This document shows, one piece after another, positions 5,415 to 52,900 of a stretch of 64,000 bases of DNA (position 1 is its first letter; the number at the start of each line of letters is the position of its first letter). Both the position numbers and the translations under genes were made by a program. The stretch spans positions 2,947,361 through 3,011,360 of the forward strand of contig CM074805.1 of the NCBI GenBank assembly GCA_037447605.1, written 5' to 3'. Under the pieces are notes generated by a model, which saw only the letters and a list, made by a program, of their open reading frames with translations, was not told the origin of the DNA and did not search any database. The DNA is from Zygnema circumcarinatum SAG 698-1b. Lineage: Eukaryota > Plantae > Zygnematophyceae.

Positions 5415-7699
5415 TGCGAGGTTCTCAAGCGAGAAGGCCGAAAGAAAAAAGAAGGAGGAGATGAGCCTACCTGGAGATTGCCTTCATGGACATGTTTTTG
5501 GCCACTCCCACACTTTGCGAGAACTCCAGCCTTCCCTCGCCCGCTCCACCTCTCCTTCACCCGCTACACCATCCTGAACGCGTATCCACCTGCACCCCAT
5601 GGACTCCCCTTCCCTGACAAACGCATTGGGTGCTGAGCCCGATCCTGCTGCCCGCTCACGCACTGCCCAGATTGCCGCGGCATTACAACCGGCTTGGTCC
5701 GAATCCCCCATCACTTCTGAAGAGGGTGCTCATGTTGGTGTGAGGGGCAGCAAGAAAGGAAAGAGTCAAGGAAGGGCATCACATGCCTTGGTATCAGAGC
5801 TCTAAACTTTTCTTTTGCTTCTCCTTGGGCCACATACCGCTCCGCTACGATATGCCTTCTCGTCCACCTCTCACCAGGTGCGCACAGCGGAAAACTAAAA
5901 CACCCCACCTACAGGTGAACTCTCTCATCCTCCATGGTCCTGCCCTCAACTCCACGCTCCTCGGATGATCTCCTCGTGTGGAGCAACACACCGCCCATAC
6001 AATGGTTGCCTCCACTCATCCACCACGTCAATCCAACATGAGGACTCACATGACGAATGATACAGAGGAGAAAGCCCTGTGACAGCTCAAAACTCCATGA
6101 GTGTAATACAAGCTCTTGAGGAAATCTACATAGATCCCTTATGCTAGATTCTCCTCCTCTCATGAGCACTATCCTATCCTCTCATAGATAGCCTACACCC
6201 CAACTACAGTAGCCAAGCACTACTTGCCTCCATGAACTCCTCCTCTACCTCAACACATGAGGGACACACCATCTAGCTCCTTCATTAAGCTTACACATTA
6301 TTGAGAGCTAGTTCCTTCACGACCTTCATACACAAGGTCGGACTCCTCTAGGCCTCAGCTCTGCCCACCTTCCCCACACAACAACGGTCGAGCAGCATAA
6401 CATTCAGGGAGAGTGAGTGACTGCGCGAGCCAAGCTTGTTCCCTCTTAAACTATGGCGGCCGGCGTGACGTGACACCCGATGTCACGTCACAGGCGCACT
6501 AGCAAGCGCATGCATTCAACAGCCAGCAAGCCGTTCAACGGCCAGCTACGCGTTCAACAGCCAGCTTCGCGGTCTCACGTAAACCTACGCCAGCACCGAC
6601 CTACGCAAGGTCGTCCGTACTGTTCCGCCGCCCGGCCGTACACGTCCGCCGCCCAGCCGTACATGTCAGCCTCCCAGTCAAGATCTGACTCGGTCCCCTT
6701 CTCAGTTGACCTCGTCAGAGCCGCGGACCGCACTAAGGGTCCAAGCAATGCCACGTGCCACCTCCTCATTCGCCGCCGACATCTCCAATCTCTTCAACCG
6801 ACTTCCGCGTCACGTCACGCCCGAAGACTGCGTCGCTATCTGCATGCTGGCGCGACCAATCATGTCGCTTCGTGCAGATCCGCCTCTCGCGCCAAATATC
6901 TCCGCGTCCATTCGTTTCGCGTCGTCCGTACAGTCGCGCGCCGTCCGTACGGCCGCGCTCCTTTTCGGTCAAGCACATTCCGTGCACCCCCTTTGGTACG
7001 GTCTAAGCCTAAGCCGTAATCCTACGACCCTAGACCTTCCCTAGACCTGTCGTACCATGCCCTAACGATACGGGCACCCCCCATGTTCGGTCCTACACCA
7101 AACATGACCATTCATACATGATATTGTCCCTATACCACCACATTGATGTCCCGGACAACATCCATGCTAGGAACTAAGTACCAACACCTTGATGTACCCT
7201 ATACATCAACAGCTCAAGCCCGGATTGCCGAGATTGCAAATGCCTTGCGCAGGCTCCCTGTCAACCAAAGTGATCCTCATTCACATCCCCTGCCATTCCT
7301 CCCTGCCGATGTCAACAGCGCCAGCTCATCTGGCACGGCTCCACCGGTCGCCACCCTTGTCCGGAGAACTTCAGTCCTCCCTCCTTCCACGGGTCATCCA
7401 TTGGGATCCACGCCTGAGGAGGAAATTGACGATCTCAATGAGGAGGAGCCGACAGCGGCGCAGCCAGAGCCGAGAGCACCAGCGACAGAAGAGATGCACG
7501 TCAACCCTCCCCATCGCCCTCGGGCAGCCCGATTCTACCCNNNNNNNNNNCCGATGACGAGACTCCCCCTCCTTCTTCTCCGAGTCCAGCTCTCGGTGCG
7601 TCGACGGGAGAACTGTTGCCGCCAGTGCTACCTGCACCCAGCTTTCCCCCCCATGAGACCATCAGTGATGAGGAGTGGCTGGAAATAGAGGGGCAGATG

Positions 7700-8990
7700 C
7701 GATTGGGGCCTGCAGTCCTCTCAGACCCGATCAAGCATTCTCAACTACGCCAAGTGCTGCGCCGAAATCACCTAGTTTTCGCACGACATTCACTCGACAT
7801 CGGCAAGACTCACTTGATTGAGCACCACATCGATACGGGGGATGCGCCTCCCGTGATGACCCTGACTCCCTACCGCTTTTCCGCCGCGCAGCAGGCCGAT
7901 GTCGAACGACAGATCGACGAGAACGTGGCTGCCGGATTGATGGAACCTGGAGAAGGGCCGTGGGCCAGCCCGGCCGTTCTGCCCCCAAAGCCGGATGGCA
8001 CACTCCGCTTCTGTGGGGACTACCGAAAACTGAATGCAATAACGAAGTGGGATCCCTACACATTACCGGATGTGGACCTGATTCTCCACGGCGTCTCCCC
8101 TGATGACCGGTGGTTCTCGGCACTTGACATGCAGAAATCCTTCTGGCAGATCCCCCTGCGGCAGGCCGATCGCTGCAAGACAGGGCTTCGCACAGCCACG
8201 CGCTTTGTGCAGTGGACAGTGCTTCCATTCGGGCTCAAGAATTCCAGTCAGACGCACCAGCGCCTGGCCAACCAGGTGTTCGGCCCCTGTCGTGCCTTCT
8301 GCGAACCTTACGTGGATGATGCCTCCCTCCACAGCAAGGACTGGTCCTCCCACCTGCAACACATTGACCAAGTCCTCCAACAGCTCATCAGTGCGCGTCT
8401 GAAGATTGCACCCAAGAAGTGCAAATGGGGACATCAGGAGATCACTCACCTCGGGCACCGCCTCGGCATCAATGGCCTGAAACCATCACTCGACAAGATT
8501 GAAGCGATTGACCTTATGCCCATTCCACAGAATCTCACTCAGCTTAAGTCTTTCTTGGGACTCACCTCCTTCTATCGCCGGTTCATCAAGGGCTATGCCC
8601 TTATTGCGCGTCCCCTACATGCCCTGGAGAAGCACGGAGTCCACTACGAATGGAGCCGTGCGCAGGATTTGGCCTTCCAAGCGCTCAAGAGTGCCCTCCT
8701 TCAGGCTCCTTGCCNNNNNNNNNNGCGCAGGATTTGGCCTTCCAAGCGCTCAAGAGTGCCCTCCTTCAGGCTCCTTGCCTGCATCAATTCGACCCCACCC
8801 TTCCCACCATTATTGACGCTGATCCGGAACCAGACAGGTTTGGGGCAGTGCCACTCGAAAGCATTCTCAGATGACACCGTCATGCCACTGCAAGCAGGTC
8901 GTCCCACAACTCGACCTACGAGGGAGAGGCCGGGCTATCCTTGGGCATTTGAGAAGTTCAAGCCTTCACCCTTACCAGCCCATCATCCGG
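7700..8990 (+). pseudogene. pol: Gypsy pol: reverse transcriptase and start of RNase H
   Basis: SPAVLPPKPDGTLRFCGDYRKLN, LDMQKSFWQI, LPFGLKNS, YVDD, LKSFLGLTSFYRRFIKGYA, followed by PTIIDA (RNase H, frameshifted). Confidence 0.95.
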
Positions 8991-9559
8991 GATGACCTAC
9001 ATGCCCTCACCCGGCCGCACATCACGGCTACCTGACGCTGAAGCCTCACTCATGGGCCATGAGTCTTGGGCAGTACAATGTACTCAAAGTCACTCACCGT
9101 CCGGCCCAGTCCACGCATGCTTGATGGACCAATCGGATCCCTCGCTTCCCCTCTCGCCACGATCGGCCGTCCTGACCCATCCCTTCACTCACCCTCTGAC
9201 CCGAGACTTCCCCATTGAGATTCACGCAGAGCAAGACTACATGAGGTCACATTTAGACTGAATTATCGAGATTCCGGCCACGGCCACCACCCTCCATCGC
9301 TGGTAGACTTGACTTCACCCACGGCCACCCCCACGCGGATCCGTGGAAAGTCTCTCATGGAACGACGATGGCTGAAAATCCCTTTCTTCCCTCCCCATTT
9401 CTCAGCCAACTATGTCCATTCTGACTCTTCCTTCCTTGTCACGTCATGACTCGCACGCCGCCCACTCCCTGTCACGGAGATCTAGAGGGCCCACGGGCTC
9501 CGCCGCGCCCGGAACTTCTCTGTCGATGATGACGGACAGATTCTTTACCTCCCCTCCGG

Positions 9560-32079: not shown

Positions 32080-32236
32080 GTTGACTCTCATTTGGTCGAC
32101 GCCACGGTGGTCGACGACCGCGGTGATCGTCGTCCGTCCGTCCGTCCGTCCGTCGTGGAGCGGTCGACCGGGTGCAGTGCGCCTGGAGGGAGGAAGGGAA
32201 GAAGACGCTCCTTCCCTGCTGAAGGCTGAAGGCTTC

Positions 32237-34074
32237 ATGGCTGCGCGGAGGCCGGAGGACCGCATGGCGGTAGCCATGGCCCTTCGAAATGTGGAGGTGG
32301 AGCGTGTCGTGGGGCCAGAAGGCGCTCTGTTTGTGCCCATGGGGACCTTTTGGAAGGATCAGGTGATTTTTTTGGATATGGTGGAGTCAATACTTTAAGA
32401 CTTAATACTCAAATAACTGCACACACCCTCCTTTTACGCGCCCTTGTACAAAAATAAACCAAGAAATGACGGCGTTTTATTAGATGATGCTTTTTAATCT
32501 CTTCGTTTTGGTGTTTTTCTGTTTTGTCACCTTTAAATCTGTTTCTGCACACGGGCTGTCGCAATTTCTTGCTTAGGCTTACGAAATACAGGCGATACTG
32601 TAGCCTCGCCGAGTCCCTTCGTATGCTTGTGTTTCAAAGGCCGGTTCTGTCGAGGGTCCTACTCTAGACTTCTAGAGTTTGAGTCTGGCAGGTGTATGGA
32701 ACATTTGATGTGAAGCACAAGTGCCCCATTGAAATCTGGAACGTTAGTTGGCAACACACTGACTGACAGGCTTAACATCATATGTTTGGAAGCCGGCCTG
32801 CCTCACCTTTTCCCACTCACGTCGTCATCTTTTGTCTATGCACACTTGTTTCATTGAAGAGGCCTGCCGAGAATATGTAAGCCGTTGTTTCTTTTTTGGA
32901 TCTTCAGTGTTCTCGCTTTGTTTCTCCCATGCTGACTATACAGGCAGTTGCCTTGTTTTTATATGGATGAAAGGTGGTGGTTATACACCTTCTACGACGG
33001 TTTGGGTGACGTCTTTGCCGTGGAGGAGCAATGGATATCTCGCGGGCGATTCCATACCTCCTCCAAGCTGGTGTTCGTGTAGTGGGCATAGGTGCGCTTC
33101 TTGGGGGAAAACGCCATCGCTTTGTCTGTTTACAATGTGCTTCAATGGATAAGAGGAGCTTGTGAAGGTCTCCGTGAGGAACTGCTGCATATGTCCTTTC
33201 AGTCTTGTTCCTAAAAGTAATTCTAAAGCTTCTGAATTTACTGAGATTGCCTCTGATCGGGACTCTACGGTTGGTCCATCACCGTGCAAATGATGGAAAA
33301 GGGTTTTTGGTACTTGACATTGAGATGATCTTGTGCTTGCCCTATGCAGGTCTTGAGACTCTTGGTGTAGAGGATTTTGTCGAGGGTGGATTCTGGAAAG
33401 GGGAGCTGTATATCGACAACGACAAGAAGGCATATAACGCCCTGTTGTTGAAATCGGTCGGCATTTGGGGAGCCATCTCACAGCTTATGTTAAATCGAAA
33501 AGTGAAAGCTGCACTAGCGCGTACCAAAACTGTTTCTGGCAATTTGGCGGGGGATGGCCTGTAAGTCACTTTCGCTTTCTTGCGCGCAATGGAAAGGAGA
33601 AAGGAAATATCAAGCGGATGGAGAGGATGCAGGACATCCTAATGTGTCATTTTTCGTTGTACTATTCTTGATACTACATAATCCTATGCTTTGTAGATGC
33701 CGTTTCAGACTGCATGTCCAACAGCCGAGCTTACAAGATGCATCATAAAGAAACTAATGACCCATCCTCATTTTTCTGTCAACCAAGGTCAACATGAGTT
33801 TTCGGCTGAAGTTTCAAAAGTCCGTAGTGCCTCTCTCAAACACCCCCATGCTGTTCGGGTGCTGGGTGGTTGCAGCCAACTTGGAGCCACGTTTGTTATG
33901 GAGGCGGGAGGGGCGACATTGTTGGACTATCGTCAGCAGAACTTCGCTGACCATCCTTCGCCGGAGCTTCTCTTGGAGACTTGTGGACTGCCTTCAACCC
34001 TCCTCCGCGAATCAATTGCCCAAGCTGTCAATGAGACTGAATGCGACGAGGATGTCTGTCGTACCGATCCATAG
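32237..34074 (+). CDS. SELENOU: PRXL2B/SELENOU-family thioredoxin-fold protein, predicted selenoprotein (217 aa, Sec54, UxxC). Exons 32237-32362, 32974-33091, 33350-33560, 33876-34074
   Basis: Spliced product ...GTFWKDQ/VVVIHLLRRFG[TGA]RLCRGGAMDISRAIPYLLQAGVRVVGIG/LETLGVEDFVEGGFWKGELYIDNDKKAY...SGNLAGDGL/QLGATFVMEAGG...FADHP. Total 654 nt, consistent splice phases, one internal TGA at the first Cys of the family CxxC motif, and a SECIS downstream. Confidence 0.88.
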
Positions 34075-34214
34075 ATGTTTCCAATCGAGAATGTCCGCCG
34101 CGGTCCAAGGAAAAAAATCGCATGGGCAGTTCAATTCTACGTGCCTTCTCATTGTATAGCATATGGAGGATGATCAAACGAGTATCTGGGATTCCCTGCA
34201 CCGGCAGTGCTTGA

Positions 34215-34288
34215 CAACCTGCATCAAACATGATGTCCCTTTTGGAAAATGCGCAAGCAGAACAAAAGCGACTGAAGTAGTGTGGTTG
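34215..34288 (+). promoter_or_regulatory. Type II eukaryotic SECIS element in the 3' UTR
   Basis: ATGA at 34230-34233, AAAA 12 nt later, 3' TGAA at 34273-34276. Helix II GTCCCTTTTG/CAAAAGCGAC (9 of 10 pairs), mini-helix TGC-GCAA-GCA, helix I CAACC/GGTTG. Confidence 0.85.
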
Positions 34289-34624
34289 CTGAGAGCTATC
34301 ACGTAGCTGTTGCTTGTCAAGACTGCTCAACGTAGTATAAAGCGCCGGTGACGCAAATTCCAATCATTCGTATTATCTGGCAGCTGTGCTGTTGTTCATG
34401 TTCGTCTTGCAAAGTGGAATGAGCGATTGTGGTGTGTGTGCATGACTTTCTGTGCAAGATGGGAACACTATTGTTCTTTTTCTTTTTTTCCCTCTGCCCA
34501 AGGGAAAGCAGTTAAAAAGCTCGTAGTTGGATTTTGGGTTGGAGCGGTCGGTCTGCCTCTACGGTTGAACTGGCCTCGCCATCCTTCTTGCCGGGGACGC
34601 GCTTCTTCGTATATGCAGACATTA

Positions 34625-34921
34625 GGGGGAGTCAGACCTTGACCATCGCCAAATCAATTTCGTAAGGCTGTCGGGCGAATTAAGCATTGGCTACGTACGC
34701 ATTTCGGTACGGCTGGGCTCAGCGAAGCCGCGGATCCCGAGCCGGAATTCGTACACGAACGAAGTGACTTTTAGTATAAGGAATTCGGGAATTTCGTAAG
34801 CGATGGTCAAGGACTGACTCCCCCTGTACACAACCGTAGCGAAATGCGTACCTAGCCAATGCTTAATTCACCCGACAGGCTTACGAAATTGATTTGGCGA
34901 TGGTCAAGGTCTGACTCCCCC
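34625..34921. mobile_element. MITE with about 90-bp TIRs and TA flanks
   Basis: GGGGGAGTCAGACCTTGACCATCGCCAAATCAATTTCGTAAG... at the left end and its reverse complement at the right; TA at 34623-34624 and 34922-34923. Confidence 0.85.
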
Positions 34922-35360
34922 TATCATTTAGTCTGCGGGCTGGTTTCCAGATGTGTGCTGTCGACAGCGTTGGCAATCGCTCAGCGACTGTCAGATTGTC
35001 AATGACCAACTCCACTGGTCGGCCACAGAGAACTGCCGCTTCTGGTCAACACGCATCACCGCTTAGTTCTGACCGAACTGAAGTCTCATTTTAGGGCGGC
35101 TGCAAGGACAGCAATTCCTGGGATAACCATTTCCATTTCCCGCGGGAGCATATATCCGGATGACGACTGATGCAGCTGCCGCTACGGAAAAGCGTCCGAG
35201 CAAGACGCAGCGAAACTTAAAGCTTGAAGCCAGCGCAATGCATACAGCGAAATTCAGTCCAATAGAACATGCCAAACAATGGCAAAGAGGCGTGAACAAA
35301 CAAGCCGAGGGAATGTGCCTTGCAGTACAGCATGTGACATAGCTGGCTGCCACAGTGTCC

Positions 35361-35546
35361 TTAAGCACCACAAGCAACTCCAATCAGAATCACTGAATAA
35401 TTAAAAACCATTCCTTCTGGTTGGGGAGGTGCGCTCATGAGCACCGCCGGCGCCACAATCCCTCCAACAGATTGGAGATAGTCACGCGGTGCAAACACGT
35501 CATGTAAAGCGTCTGCTGCCAGCAATGGGCACACTGGCGATGACAA
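35361..35546 (-). CDS. Possible small membrane protein resembling DPM2
   Basis: LWLLSSPVCPLLAADALHDVFAPRDYLQSVGGIVAPAVLM loosely resembles the DPM2 pattern W...PF...H.YF.P.EYA followed by a hydrophobic helix. Gene structure not resolved. Confidence 0.3.
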   Translation of the reverse strand: MSSPVCPLLAADALHDVFAPRDYLQSVGGIVAPAVLMSAPPQPEGMVFNYSVILIGVACGA

Positions 35547-36303
35547 CAGCCACAGCTAAAGAAAAGGCTAAGTTCATTTTCGCCTCAAAAAAAAAGAGAG
35601 GGAAATCACTTAGTCTTCAAACAGCCTTGCCTTGCGCAGTCACCCAGGCTGGACATCGCATTATCCGTGCGTTAGATTTACGGACCAGATCCAGGTCAGC
35701 ATCACAGCCTCCTAAGGAAAAACTCGACACAGAAGAAGACAAATGACAGAACTCACACTGTCGGTGCACGGTGCAATTAGTACCTTCACCTCATGGCCCT
35801 TTGATCGCCAAATTTCAATAGTGTAAGAAAATTGCAGAAAAGTACATCTATCTGATTAACGAACGAGAGACCAGTGATCCACAGTTCCTCAGACTCCATC
35901 TGCCTTCCACCACTCCCAAGCTCAAAGCATACTAAGCAAAAAAACCGTCGCAAACTCGGACGTTTCCTTTTGGAACGTCTCGCAACTCTCGGACTCAGGA
36001 ATGCCGAGCCATATGGTCACCTTTTCTTAATGGGTCTACGACAAAGCTACCGGCAATATGGGAAAGGAATGAAGTACATTGCACAGCAATAAGAAGTTTG
36101 ATAAGGAAAAAAACGAGTTCTTAACCAAATACAAACAGCTCTTGCGACAACTCTTCGCCAACAAAATGCTCATCCAACAAATGCTCCTAGGTACAATATA
36201 TAGCCCCATTCCTGTGCTTGTGCCTGGTTCTATCTCGAATAAAATTGGAGAAAGCGAACTCAACTTATCTGCATGGATCAATAGGCAGTTCGCCGATTGT
36301 TTT

Positions 36304-39005
36304 CTACTCCGCCGCCTTCAAAGGCTTGACAGTCTCCCACGTGAAATCGGGGTCATTTCTACCGAAGTGGCCATAGGCAGCCGTCTTCTGGTACCTCTTG
36401 TTACCGCCGCGCTTCAAGTCGAGGGAGATGGCAATCATTCCTGGTCTGAAGTCGAAACTCTCCTTGACAAGCTTTAGAATTTCCTTGTCGGGAATCTTGC
36501 CGGTGCCATACGTGTCCACAAAGATAGACAACGGCTCCGGAACACCAATGGCGTACGAAACCTGGACAAAGTGAAGAAAATTCCAATAAAACATTCCAGT
36601 AAAGCTTGAGAAACGTGGTCCCATGTAGAAGGAAATGATAGACCAGCTGCAAAGGAGAGAACTTAACAATCGCAAAAGTTGAAAAAGGGATTAAAGAAGC
36701 ACTTTTTTTCAGAACAGAAGCCGGCAGCCTACTTCGATATGTCATGTGTAGCAGGTTCGTAGGTTGATTACGATGAAATAAAACCATTAGGTTCAAGCCT
36801 CATCCTCCATGCCACAAGGCGGAAAGTCTGAAAAGTCAGTTCTATACCTGAACAATGGCTCGGCGGGCGAGCCCAGCAGCAACGATACTCTTTGCAGCCT
36901 GGCGCACAATGTAGGCACCTGAGCGATCCACTTTAGTCGGGTCCTTCCCAGAGAAGGCACCACCTCCATGGGCTCCCCAGCCACCATAAGTATCAATAAT
37001 AATTTTCCTTCCAGTGAGACCCGCATCACCATGGGGTCCACCAATAACGAAACGACCGGAAGGGTTCAAATGGAAAATCGTGTTTTCATCCAGGTACTTG
37101 GCAGGGATGACGGGCTTGATGACATACTCCATCAAGTCGGCAGCAATTTGGTCATTGGTGACCGTTTCATCATGCTGGAAAGTAAAAGAAAACATGTACA
37201 CAGACAGATCAACAAGAGGTGAAACTCGCAACATAGAAAATGATATGCAAGTAACTAAGTATTCATAAATGATTGGCACTAGTCAGAAACTCCTCGAGTT
37301 AACCAATGCGAGCGTTAGTTCAGTACTTAAATCACTGCTGCCGTCAGTGATTAAAAACCGAAAAGCAGCACTACAATGACGATTCAGCTCTAAATAGATC
37401 ATAGACGTACAATCCCGTCAGAGATTGAACAGCCTAGACTGCAGCACCGTTCATCAGCACAAAAGTTGAATACCCACGAACTAAGTAAAACACTCGTGAT
37501 CAGTAGCAGGAGAGCATTCACAAACCTGAGTCGAAATAAGGACAGTGTGCACACGAATAGGTACCATAGCGCCACCCTCGTTCTTGTACTCCGCAGTCAC
37601 CTGTGTCTTTCCATCAGGTCGCAGCCACCTGCATTTTCCCTCAAAAAAAAATCAATTAGAAGCAGCAGGACGCAACATAGTAGGTCAGATCATTGAAGGT
37701 TGACAAAAATGCAATGTACATTCACATCCTGAAACGAGTTGACAAGGTAATCAAATTCAGTCCGCCCAAGTTCAAGAAACTGGAGTGCATACGTTCATGG
37801 ACAAGACAGCGTAATTGCTTCCGGTACTTACTTGCAGGTTCCATTTTTCCTGACTTCAGTCAGCTTAGCTCCAAGCTTGGTAGCAAGAACGTGAGTCAAA
37901 GGCATCAGCTCCTCGGTTTCATCAGTAGCATAGCCAAACATGTGCCCTTGGTCACCAGCACCAATTTCTTCGGGCTTCTTTGTGCCCATTCCGTGCACGC
38001 CCTGGCCAATGTCGGGACTTTGAGCTTCAATGTTCACCAGAACCTGTGACGAACAGATAATTTATCAGGCATTGAAGTAATAAAAGACAGAGCTTACAGA
38101 ATACCTTTAGTGAAGCAAGAATATAACCATGAAAGAAAGAAACTGTTAAGAGGGAGACGAAGATCCGCGACAAAATAAAACCCCGCCTCACTGTCACGGC
38201 GTCCAATAAAAAGTTCTTGAAATATGAATCAATCCGCATTGTCACAAAATCCTACGGAAAAACATTTCTGATCTGAGATCTTAAAAACTCTCAAGGCTTA
38301 AATCTGCAAACCGGATCGGCAAAATAAAGAGGAGCTCTAACCTTGCAGGTGTCAGCGTCCAGTCCCACAGCCTCGGAAACAAATCCGATCTCACGGCAAG
38401 TGTCCCTCACAATTTTTTCGTAGTCAACTTGCGCGCTTGTGGTGATCTCACCAAAAATCATCACCATTCCGGTCTTTGTGCAACTCTCACAGGCGACCTT
38501 GCTATTAGGGTCTTGCTCCAAGCATGCATCCAAGACGGCATCTGAGACCTGCAAGCCATTCACGGCAAAGCGGGCAGAAAAGTTACAGCTTGCAGCAGTT
38601 ACAGTTACAAAGCTATACCAGACATTTCTGTAATCAATAATAAATAGAGTTTACAATCAGAGCACACTCCAATTTCTGTTCATCGCACTGAAGTAACCAT
38701 CTGTTATCTACCAATATCTGGAACGATCAACACGCAGTGCAGAATATACGTATCCAACTATGAAATAATCATCCAACACCAACGCAATGGAATAACGAAT
38801 CAGATCCTTCCGCCAGTCCCACCTTACACCGTTTCCGGGAATCTGCAAATCACAAACCAGACATCGATCACACATATTCACCAAACAATACAACCATGCA
38901 GAGCACTACCGGCCGTCCACAAACTTCCGCACCCCTTACCTGATCGCAGAGCTTGTCGGGATGGCCCTCATTCACTGATTCAGAGGTGAACAAGAAAGTC
39001 TCCAT
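36304..39005 (-). CDS. SAMS: S-adenosylmethionine synthetase (6 coding exons)
   Basis: [104 protein letters not shown]. Confidence 0.98.
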
Positions 39006-39352: not shown

Positions 39353-39931
39353 CATACATACATACATGCAGTACATACATACATACATACATATATACAT
39401 ACATATATACATACATACATACATACATACATACATACATACATACATACATACATACATACATACATACATACATACATACATACATACATACATACGT
39501 ACATACATACATACATACATATATACATACATATATACATACATACATACATACATACATACATACATACATACATACATACATACATACATACATACAT
39601 ACATACATACATACATACGCATACATACATACATACATACATACATACATACATACATACATACATACATACATACATACATACATACATACATACATAC
39701 ATACATACATACATACATACATACATACATACATACATACATACATACATACATACATACATACATACATACATACATACATACATACATACATACATAC
39801 ATACATACATACATACATACATACATACATACATACATACATACATACATACATACATACATACATACATACATACATGCATACATACATACATGCATAC
39901 ATACATACATACATGCATACATACATACATA
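39353..39931. repeat. (ATAC)n microsatellite, about 580 bp
   Basis: Near-perfect array with occasional ATAT, ACGT and ATGC variants. Confidence 0.99.
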
Positions 39932-40406
39932 CAGTCATATTTTCCACCCTGGTTTTGGCCAATATGAGGCGAAAATATTGATTTTGCATATATAAGGTTC
40001 GTGTTACCAATAGACGGGCGGTATTATGTTAGAGTTCATGTTGGACCGTACGTACCGTACGATATCGTACCGTACCGTATCGTATCGGTTACTATAGCTC
40101 GTACCGGTAGTACGGATAGTGCCATATCGGAGCGTTTCGTATCGTATCAGTAGTATCGTATCGTATCGTATCGAAGTCAAGAAGAAGGGGAGAAGAGCGA
40201 GCGCCTCTTACGGCGGCACGTGCGGGGAGATTAGGTGAGTTTTGCGTAAGCCCGTAACGGCTAGTACAGATAGTACGGCTAGTACGGACAGTACGAATAG
40301 TACGGCTAACACAAAGTTACCGTACAAAAAGGTGGTTTCGGCAAAGTCGGGGCGAAATTCTTGGGGACGCACTCCTCAGGGCAGTAAATACGAGGACGGT
40401 TGACTG
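39932..40406 (-). mobile_element. Tc1/mariner-like MITE (475 bp), same family as 13093-15269, inserted at a TA inside the microsatellite
   Basis: TA|CAGTCA...TGACTG|TA termini. The body is the reverse complement of 13093-13220 plus 14265-14554. The left TIR has a short internal deletion. Confidence 0.85.
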
Positions 40407-49919: not shown

Positions 49920-52900
49920 TCAGATTTCCTCCAGATCCTCCTCTTCCCCTTTTCTTCCTGCTTGCTCCTTCCAGAAAAGTAGTTGCTTCCTCAGTTTTTG
50001 AATCTCTCGTGTTTGCACATTGCGTGAGGCATCATTGGTAATCGATCGGACACGAGTGGCGTAGCTGCACTCAGATAACAGCGGCTTCACAGATTAGTGC
50101 GGCTCCTTTTGTCAAGTTGGAACGTCAATCGTCAATCTTTGCTAAGGTACAGCTGCAGAAATGCGCACACTAAAACGCAAGGTTCTTTCACTTTCCTCTC
50201 TCAGCAATAAACGTAACGAGGTGCAACACCAAACTCACCTTAAAGAATTGTGCGTTTCGTCCAGGTTGGACTCTGCTGGCGATATATTGACAAACATAAG
50301 TGTCTTGGCATTGCCTCCCAATGAATCACTCATCAGCATCGTCAGCTTGTGATTGCGGTAGGGAATGTGAGGATCATCCTGAGCGAGCGCACTGATAACA
50401 TCACCTAGAGCCGAGAGCGACTTATTGATTGACTGTGCCTCTTTCAGCTGCTCTCCCGTGCTGCCCGACTTTTTGATCCGCTCTGATCCCGCAAGGTCCA
50501 CAAAGCTCAGCTGCACAAACACCATACCAGAATTTCCAGCTCACAAACATGCGCCTGATTGCAATAAACCAATCCATACCCCATAGGCACAGCGACAGCT
50601 CTGAGACCAAGGCATTTCAACATATCCCTTGCCTCAACTGCTGGCATGCAGACCACTAAACTTGTGGATTTGCTCATCTTCCTGATTCGTCAAGGCCCCC
50701 GCAAATTAGTGTTTGCTAAGGCGAAGTTTACCTTGCCCTTCAAAAGGGTTTGCGTCTGGTAGTTAGTAGCCTCAATGATGATCGAAAGAATGAGATGGGA
50801 GCGTGAACTCTCCGCATTCATGTTGGTTCCTGCTGTCACTCTGCGCTCCATACCCTTCTCTACAATGGTCTGAAGCTCCTCCAGCTTCTCCACTGAGATG
50901 ATAGTCGCGTTTTCCACAACCACCATTCCCTGAACCGAAAAAAGACATAATTTCAATATGTACCTTTTCAGGCACGGACAGTGTCACGAACATTAGAGAT
51001 GCCCTAAAACATGGCAGCTTGCAATCGGATGCTCAGAGATGTGATAAACCAATGACAGGTACTTCGCTCATACAGAAGTCAAGTATGCCAACCAGCCGAC
51101 AACACAGTTCGCCCATTCCAAACAGACAGGAGATCTCACCTTGATGTCTTTTTTTATCTCTAACTTCTTCTTTGCTGCGCCCTTCGGAACCAGGAGGTCT
51201 TGAAGATTGTCTTGGTAAAGCTCCAACATGTATACCTGAATTAACCTCTCACGAAGCACAAACGAAATCAGGACCATACTCTAATGCAATGACAGTAGCA
51301 CATTTACATTCCTCCACCGTGCATTAAGATTCCGAGGACCTATGATGTTATCGAAAGACGAGGATTGCAGTCACTTGTCGTGTCAAACAAGAATAAACAA
51401 CATCTGTACAAGGACTCCACTGAATGAAAACTTACTGTCGAGGTAAGCAATGCGCATTCTACAGACATTGAAAAAGTACACATCGGGAGCTCACAAAGTA
51501 AAGGTCATTCCATTTCAGCCATTACACTTTCCTTAACGGATTTATTCAATTGCCGCCTCGATGTAGGCAGGAGAACTGCAAGCATGCCCCGCTTTCTTCA
51601 TAACGATCCTTCGAGGCTCAAAATCATGCACAACACTTTCCGTCCGAAACTTTTCGCCCAACAAAAGCATGGCTGCTCCTACATGTGCAAGAGAGTGGTG
51701 GCAACCAACCTTAAGAGCAAACGAGATTTTGCCCGAGTCCCTGTCCAAACAGCGGAACAGCTCTTGCATGGCGCGGGCAGTAAGGCCCTCATTCCCCGGT
51801 GCACCGTAAATGGTGTATGTCTTTCCCGACCCCGTCTGTCCGTATGCAAAAATGCATACGTTATAGCCATCAATGGCAGACTGCACCAAATACTGCACAG
51901 TACATCACCAAAAGACTGAATTAGGTGCGAAACATGTGATTCAACTAAATCATAATAAAAAATAAATTCACGTCCCAAAATGAAATGGCATGCAAAGTCA
52001 GCTTTGTGATCCGCTCAAATTGGGTACTGGTCCCACCCAGACAGATAAGTAGTTTTTCCTAAAATGTGTCCAGTCGGAAAAAAAAAGAAGCCATTTCCGG
52101 TTGTGCAATTCCTCACCTTCGTGTCTTCAAACACTTCCTCCTGAGATGCTCGCTCATCAAATACATGGTCAAATTGATGCTGTTTGGGCTTTTCTCCATC
52201 CTTCCATGGGTGCACCATGGTGAACTCGTCTGGTGAGGAAATGACATTCTTTTGATTCTCCACGATCTCTTTCTCGCTGAGGGGCCGAGATCGTGCGTAC
52301 ACTCTGATTTTACCTTTCATGTCTTCCATCATATTAAAGTAGCGCTTGCGAAGCAACTGCTCGTCCATGTACAGCCTTTCCAGCTCTGCTATTTGGTCGC
52401 TCTGCTTCTGTATGACCTCAGCTGCGACTGTGTTTTTCCGTTCCATATCCTATGCACCATCGTCCCGCCCCACGAAAACTTAAGAACAGTCAGTCTCAAA
52501 AGCCAAGCCTTTGCAGAGCTAGCTGCCGTTCTTCAGAAGAAGAAGCACCAAACGAGAAATTTACGCCTTTCTGACAAAAAATAAATGCAAAGGGTGCACC
52601 TTTGCACGGTGCTACATATGGTTTTGTCTTCATACCGTGTACAAAGCGGTCCATAAAGCCGCGACATGCCAAATAGAGTATACGGGGAAAACTCTTTATG
52701 CATGTATTTTACCAAGCAACAATAGCAATGTACTTTCCAACCCTCACCTCTTTCAGTTCACGAAGTTCTTCAAGTTCTTTAATAAGATCATCAATATGCT
52801 CCATTTGGTGTGTTTTCTCCGCCAGTTCTGCTTCCAGCATGGTGATGTGCTTGCTCTGCTCCTCAGCTTTTCTCTCTGCTGCTTCTACTCGGTTTGCCAT

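Follow-up and report, generated by a model that had tools for sequence, protein, structure and literature searches.

Introduction

The SelU proteins, which are selenoproteins in fish, birds and unicellular eukaryotes and are represented by cysteine (Cys) homologues elsewhere (PMC2375036), belong, as SELENOU, to the four most widespread selenocysteine (Sec) proteins of algae (PMC7539508), and all of the Sec-encoding SELENOU genes detected in animals fall within the SELENOU1/PRXL2A branch (PMC3316567; bioRxiv 10.1101/2025.05.29.656587). For PGFS, the PRXL2B protein of humans, it has been described that Cys44 is the nucleophile and Cys47 its partner, and that Arg40 and Arg41 create a positive active site (PMC12938796). 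As to the streptophyte algae, all of their classes keep the Sec machinery, with few selenoproteins per species, and the authors who reported this also asked what the genomes of desmids would show (PMC6627142).

Annotation routinely goes wrong for selenoprotein genes, as gene callers take the UGA for a stop. A preliminary description, made from the letters alone, of a 64-kb stretch of the genome of the streptophyte alga Zygnema circumcarinatum SAG 698-1b (contig CM074805.1; hereafter “the window”, whose numbering is used throughout unless another contig is named) had proposed a gene labeled as PRXL2B, with an in-frame TGA that would be read as Sec54 of a UxxC selenoprotein rather than mark a pseudogene. 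The analysis presented here leads us to conclude that the locus is an expressed PRXL2-family gene of 217 residues, in which UGA54 is very probably recoded as Sec via a type II SECIS element.

Results

Gene Structure and Expression

The locus is a real, expressed four-exon nuclear gene (Table 1). Its coding parts of 126, 118, 211 and 199 nt add up to 654 nt, i.e., 217 codons and a TAG, and the sole internal stop is the TGA at codon 54, found in the context VVVIHLLRRFG*RLCR and followed by 163 sense codons; these exons, their phase and lengths, as well as the number of downstream sense codons, had all been predicted beforehand and were borne out by both the sequence and the RNA contigs. The N-terminus encoded by exon 1 aligns with those of two homologous mRNA contigs (L001 and L006) and of Closterium.

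Table 1. Features of the gene and its transcript, in positions of the window.
Feature	Position	Strand	Evidence
5' UTR (transcript start approximate)	32161..32236	+	RNA contig starts at 32161-32177
Exon 1, coding part, codons 1-42 from ATG	32237..32362	+	translation; joint 32362/32974 in 4 runs
Exon 2, RRFG-U-RLC-R redox motif (U predicted)	32974..33091	+	translation; both joints (the second one 33091/33350) in 4 runs
In-frame TGA, predicted Sec54	33007..33009	+	unchanged in RNA contigs, 4 studies
Hairpin, 11 nt past the UGA, possible Sec redefinition element	33021..33065	+	folds, synonymous-codon shuffles
Exon 3, AhpC-TSA_2 domain core	33350..33560	+	Pfam PF13911; PDB 9us9 PGFS
Exon 4, coding part, TAG at 34072-34074, C-terminal CDEDVC tail	33876..34074	+	translation; joint 33560/33876 in 4 runs
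3' UTR	34075..34372	+	RNA contig ends at 34324-34372, zero depth beyond
Type II SECIS	34215..34288	+	MFE fold (34205-34298), pattern match, covariation, covariance model

The three splice joints, all of them GT..AG, were found exactly as proposed in the Logan contigs of four runs, each belonging to a different study, with no skipping of, or splicing around, the TGA, and the contigs of these four runs over 32100-34500 contained no other joints and no indels or base changes in the exons. A single 909-nt RNA contig (run X20) extends over 32232-34324, includes all three joints and shows zero differences from the genome. As the mature mRNA contig carries the UGA unchanged, the codon is neither edited, nor spliced around, nor an assembly error, and as the first joint occurs in the RNA contigs of four studies, the GAAAG acceptor of exon 2, previously flagged as “weak”, is truly used. 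Depth in the RNA contigs is 140-670 over the exons and 0-17 over the introns, the transcript reaching from ~32161 to ~34372. Sampled 31-mers of 32100-34500 are present in full (100%) in six DNA runs from three studies, which may themselves be the source of the assembly, and 14 further runs contain 53-76% of them, this being the share expected for RNA. Where an assembly error would be betrayed by TGC or TGT, RNA and DNA contigs are identical to each other, and the TGA stands unchanged in the mRNA contigs of all four studies.

Surroundings of the Gene

Past the transcript end, at a distance of ~135 nt, there is a fragment of ~100 nt (34508-34600; GCAGTTAAAAAGCTCGTAGTTGGATTT...) resembling the V4 region of eukaryotic 18S rRNA (Rfam SSU_rRNA_eukarya positions 615-772, 11.3 bits, E 0.46), and directly after it comes a 100-nt inverted repeat (34623-34722 and 34824-34923; arms 92% complementary and separated by 101 nt) that looks like a MITE or a foldback element. 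A multi-exon S-adenosylmethionine synthetase gene follows on the minus strand (36304-39000), just upstream of which lies a (CATA)n microsatellite of ~145 copies (39353-39933), preceded by (CCGC)15 and giving rise to long spurious ORFs. The left part of the window is GC-rich, and there the plus-strand ORF at 7616-8995 encodes a reverse transcriptase domain (RVT_1, E 1e-25), which points to a retroelement. No tRNA genes were found in the 64-kb window.

Family Assignment

Exon 3 alone is recognized by Pfam as PF13911, AhpC-TSA_2 (E 7.7e-8, 33.1 bits vs. a cut-off of 27), and PGFS is the only protein in the PDB that it matched (9us9, E 4e-6). The active-site motif, RRFG-U-RL-C-R with the predicted Sec in place, occupies residues 50-58, and the R, R, G, C, C and R of this motif are nearly invariant in the family alignment (A2). 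When the Closterium Cys orthologue is compared with human PGFS (9US9), the match is strong (E 1e-27) and RRFGCRIC is aligned on RRFGCVVC, by which the predicted Sec54, Cys57 and Arg50/Arg51 of the window gene correspond to Cys44, Cys47 and Arg40/Arg41 of PGFS, respectively.

The AlphaFold model of this Closterium orthologue (pLDDT 87) compares with PRXL2B at TM 0.74-0.85, 31-35% identity and E 1e-17 to 2e-18, vs. 21-23% identity and ~E 1e-11 for PRXL2A, and 18-21% and ~E 1e-9 for PRXL2C. Judged by the proxy of the modeled orthologue, the window gene thus seems closest to the PRXL2B/PGFS branch, and the PRXL2B label it had been given can be retained, the orthologue being closer to PRXL2B than to either PRXL2A or PRXL2C and matching PGFS as stated above; orthology to the Sec-containing SELENOU1 (PRXL2A) branch did not emerge, the identity and fold scores favoring PRXL2B. 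At its C-terminus the family has a Cys-x(2-4)-Cys tail (34030-34071 in the window), which reads ECDEDVC here, ACEGGEC in Closterium and VCKDEVC in the metagenome contig L008, with one of the Cys nearly invariant across the family (alignment A2); it may act as a relay or resolving site.

Homologues and the UGA Column

Searches were run with exon pieces and with orthologues, the UGA being entered as X in the scripts. An exhaustive HMMER search with the exon 3 query gave 80 matches, many of them N-terminally truncated and beginning just past the redox motif, as is usually seen when a selenoprotein has been mis-called. TGA is present at the same codon in six homologues, namely, two mRNA contigs (L001 and L006), two genomic metagenome contigs (L007 and L008) and two marine contigs (L013 and L015); L001 reads ...HLLRRFG*RLCRGGAMEISRAIP, and the marine contigs read FFRRFG*QLCR and FMRRFG*MFCR. 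The protein calls made on homologues (P0002, P0084, P0022 and P0034) are, without exception, cut to begin after the UGA, and a protein search with P0002 returned only two proteins. Across homologues, the column which the preliminary description had singled out for comparison is occupied either by TGA or by TGC/Cys. Three matches to an RRFG-UGA-x-LCRGG pattern in metagenome DNA were set aside, as all of them were chance matches with no homologous context.

Selection across the UGA

The window gene, L001 and L006 all retain the TGA itself, and the comparison among these three gave, downstream of the UGA, a dN/dS of 0.14-0.15 at a non-synonymous divergence of 0.22-0.24, and, upstream of it, a dN/dS of 0.07-0.33, with the synonymous sites being saturated (pS 0.69-0.79). 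Relaxed selection beyond the stop had been named as an outcome that would speak against a selenoprotein; what is seen instead is purifying selection that persists, and this, together with the saturation of synonymous sites, rules out both a pseudogene and a tail that is not translated. That the TGA might stem from faulty assembly or sequencing, or the gene be a recently inactivated pseudogene, is suggested by the stop codon itself and by nothing more, and the chances of this being so are negligible, given that the sequence is identical in the RNA contigs of four studies and the DNA contigs of three, and that the TGA has been kept by lineages so far apart that their synonymous sites have reached saturation.

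A different matter is whether the UGA could be a true stop, so that the gene would yield a 53-residue peptide only, or, by a restart at Met62 (MDISRAIP...), a truncated protein devoid of the redox motif. The automatic calls on the homologous mRNA contigs (P0002 and P0084) do begin at that Met, and the insertion of Sec is here a prediction from sequence; still, we find termination at this codon very unlikely, as seven sequences retain the reading frame beyond the UGA, the part upstream of the UGA is also under purifying selection, and the truncated protein would be left without the fold-defining strand and the CxxC-equivalent. The mRNA, moreover, is abundant and gives no sign of nonsense-mediated decay, and the conserved SECIS described below would be purposeless if translation were to end at codon 53.

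SECIS Element

At gathering thresholds, Rfam reported nothing in the window, and its SECIS models had no match at E ≤ 10 over 33900-35600, which is why a SECISearch-like pattern of our own (ATGAN; helix II of 10-13 nt with ≤2 mismatches; AA; type I/II apex; NGAN; helix I of 7 nt) was used with simulated controls, along with a covariance model. When the two strands of the 64-kb window (128 kb in all) were scanned, the pattern matched once, in the gene's own 3' UTR and on the correct strand, where 0.083 matches per 128 kb would be expected by chance according to second-order Markov simulations of the window. The element scores 77.8 bits with the covariance model, whose second match in the window (49990-50043, minus strand; E 0.22, with deletions) we regard as a chance one.

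All of the canonical features are present in this 3' UTR SECIS: the ATGA...GA quartet, helix II, the unpaired A's and helix I. In the MFE fold, helix I is formed by 34215-34224 and 34280-34288, and the core is an internal loop in which ATGA (34230-34233) lies opposite TGA-A, with the GA at 34274-34275. Helix II (34235-34245 and 34262-34272) consists of nine pairs and a C·C mismatch, and is followed by the unpaired AAAA at 34246-34249 and by an apex (34250-34259) with a 3-bp mini-stem, TGC/GCA, closed by a GCAA loop, which makes the element type II. Its core is situated 155 nt past the stop codon and, in the spliced mRNA, 650 nt past the UGA.

A SECIS of the same architecture occupies the same relative place in L001 and L008. 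In the three-way alignment of these with the window (A1), 94% of the cells are paired, vs. 28-44% when the partners are slid, and five of the nine pairs of helix II have changed on both sides in a compensatory manner among the three sequences. One UGA homologue (L005/L006) yielded no convincing SECIS, only a weak GUGA-type candidate (L005 750-812, E 0.41). In the SECIS of L008 (L008 1125-1245), the core is separated from the 3' strand of helix I by an additional hairpin.

Hairpin Downstream of the UGA

Along the alignment of the coding sequences, the two most stable conserved folds are a hairpin beginning shortly after the UGA (GGAGGAGC...CCUCCUCC in the window, with counterparts in L001, L006, L007, L008 and L009) and a second structure that encloses the UGA in its loop (-23..+24). 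The hairpin was found in all five of the UGA homologues tested, where its stability exceeds that of synonymous-codon shuffles (z -1.4 to -3.0), and it was just as evident in the Closterium gene that has TGC (Cys) at this codon (z -2.85). As an equally stable hairpin is carried by a Cys gene, it is not specific to recoding and was not accepted as a recoding element; it could be a relic, or it could be unrelated.

This bears on the notion that readthrough of the UGA might be the work of a near-cognate tRNA (that for Trp, Arg or Cys), possibly aided by the hairpin, with no selenium involved. A stable hairpin 11 nt past the UGA in five out of five UGA homologues and a SECIS that Rfam fails to recognize would both fit such a scenario, but we attach little probability to it: the hairpin, being present in the Closterium TGC gene as well, is not specific to recoding, the SECIS is canonical in all features and shows covariation, and the codon falls exactly on the catalytic Cys column, where function would be kept only by Sec or Cys.

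Cysteine Forms and Phylogeny

Three Closterium strains (Closterium sp. Naga37s-1, NIES-65 and NIES-68) encode a Cys form, ...FLRRFGCRICRGGAMDMSRAIP..., the catalytic codon at the Naga37s-1 locus being TGC. The window gene is only 52-60% identical to the Closterium proteins and belongs to a clade separate from theirs. Both the window gene and the Naga37s-1 gene have a phase-0 intron after exon 1, and, apart from the gene itself, no synteny was detected between the two loci; the 17.6 kb of the Naga37s-1 locus contained no match to the SECIS pattern. Several degenerate extra copies of exons 2/3 are found inside an intron of the Naga37s-1 gene (L009 3600-4800), and the Closterium Cys gene is annotated as a fusion with a downstream alpha/beta-hydrolase gene (P0012 and P0001).

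Cys proteins also occur in liverworts, mosses, a lycophyte and ferns (Marchantia being among the sources), where they go by the name of prostamide/prostaglandin F synthase. The named land-plant members listed by a word-based search come from these groups, with none from seed plants, which may mean that seed plants have lost the gene, or else that such a search has its limits. In the maximum-likelihood tree, the window gene, L001 and L006 form a supported Sec clade (96/90), which adjoins Closterium with weak support (84/76), and the land-plant Cys clade is placed opposite. By this gene, the alga behaves like a member of the Zygnematophyceae other than the Closterium strains that have been sequenced.

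Discussion

The reading of this gene as a UxxC selenoprotein with Sec54, and not a pseudogene, which had been put forward from the letters alone, is supported by the UGA in the mRNA, the SECIS, the Sec/Cys column and the purifying selection, and the UGA codon at the catalytic site almost certainly encodes Sec. The insertion of Sec, its chemistry and its substrate are what we infer from these data: the SECIS in the 3' UTR would recruit SBP2, eEFSec and Sec-tRNA, and the ribosome would insert Sec at UGA54 rather than terminate. The product would be a UxxC thioredoxin-fold reductase with the active site R50-R51-F-G-U54-R-L-C57-R58, in which, by analogy with PGFS, the Sec54 selenolate would attack either the O-O bond of a peroxide/endoperoxide or a disulfide; a selenenylsulfide with Cys57 would then form and be reduced by a thioredoxin- or NADPH-linked system.

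Sec use by streptophyte algae has already been published, and so has algal SELENOU of the Sec type; the window gene, with its PRXL2B type, is therefore a modest twist and no new phenomenon, and it leaves the knowledge of Sec decoding unchanged. With the corrected model, the small selenoproteome of this alga near the land plants grows by one, which helps to chart the redox enzymes that retained selenium shortly before the Sec system as a whole was lost in land plants, and the window gene and its counterparts in Closterium and bryophytes constitute a natural Sec/Cys pair for testing the benefit of selenium to a PGFS-type site.

A more far-reaching scenario, which we put forward tentatively and do not hold to be the likelier course of events, would be that the orthogroup changed from Sec to Cys on at least two occasions (in Closterium and in the land-plant ancestor) as Sec was given up, the window gene being the Sec form that survived, that this gene encodes a PRXL2B-type (SELENOU3) enzyme with Sec, and that the hairpin is a “fossil” Sec redefinition element. 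If this were true, the gene would directly mark the final stages in which selenoproteins were lost during the move to land, and there would be a Sec enzyme in the PRXL2B (SELENOU3) branch, in which animals have no detected Sec gene.

Comparison with Known Systems

The Cys-type genes of Closterium, liverworts, mosses, a lycophyte and ferns are of the same orthogroup as the window gene, being 44-60% identical to it, and those of Closterium and the land plants share with it the phase-0 intron after ...FW(K/E)xQ; they differ in having TGC/Cys at the catalytic codon (and, in Closterium, no SECIS), whereas the window gene has TGA and a SECIS. The SELENOU of other algae (Ostreococcus and Thalassiosira) belongs to the same family and likewise has Sec first in the UxxC and a SECIS in the 3' UTR, but the window gene comes from a streptophyte alga near the land plants. 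The SELENOU1 (PRXL2A) of vertebrates, known from fish and birds, is of the same superfamily and follows the same UxxC logic, yet it is a different paralogue.

The human counterpart is PGFS (PRXL2B, called SELENOU3 in a 2026 preprint; PDB 9US9/9USA), which shares the thioredoxin-like AhpC-TSA_2 fold, to which the model of the Closterium orthologue compares at TM 0.76/0.85 with 33% identity, and which, like the window gene, has RRFG-[C/U]-xx-C-R with its Arg pair, a similar length and a C-terminal Cys tail. The prostaglandin chemistry of PGFS is not established in algae; where human PGFS has Cys44, the window gene has a UGA, predicted to be read as Sec, and a SECIS in its mRNA.
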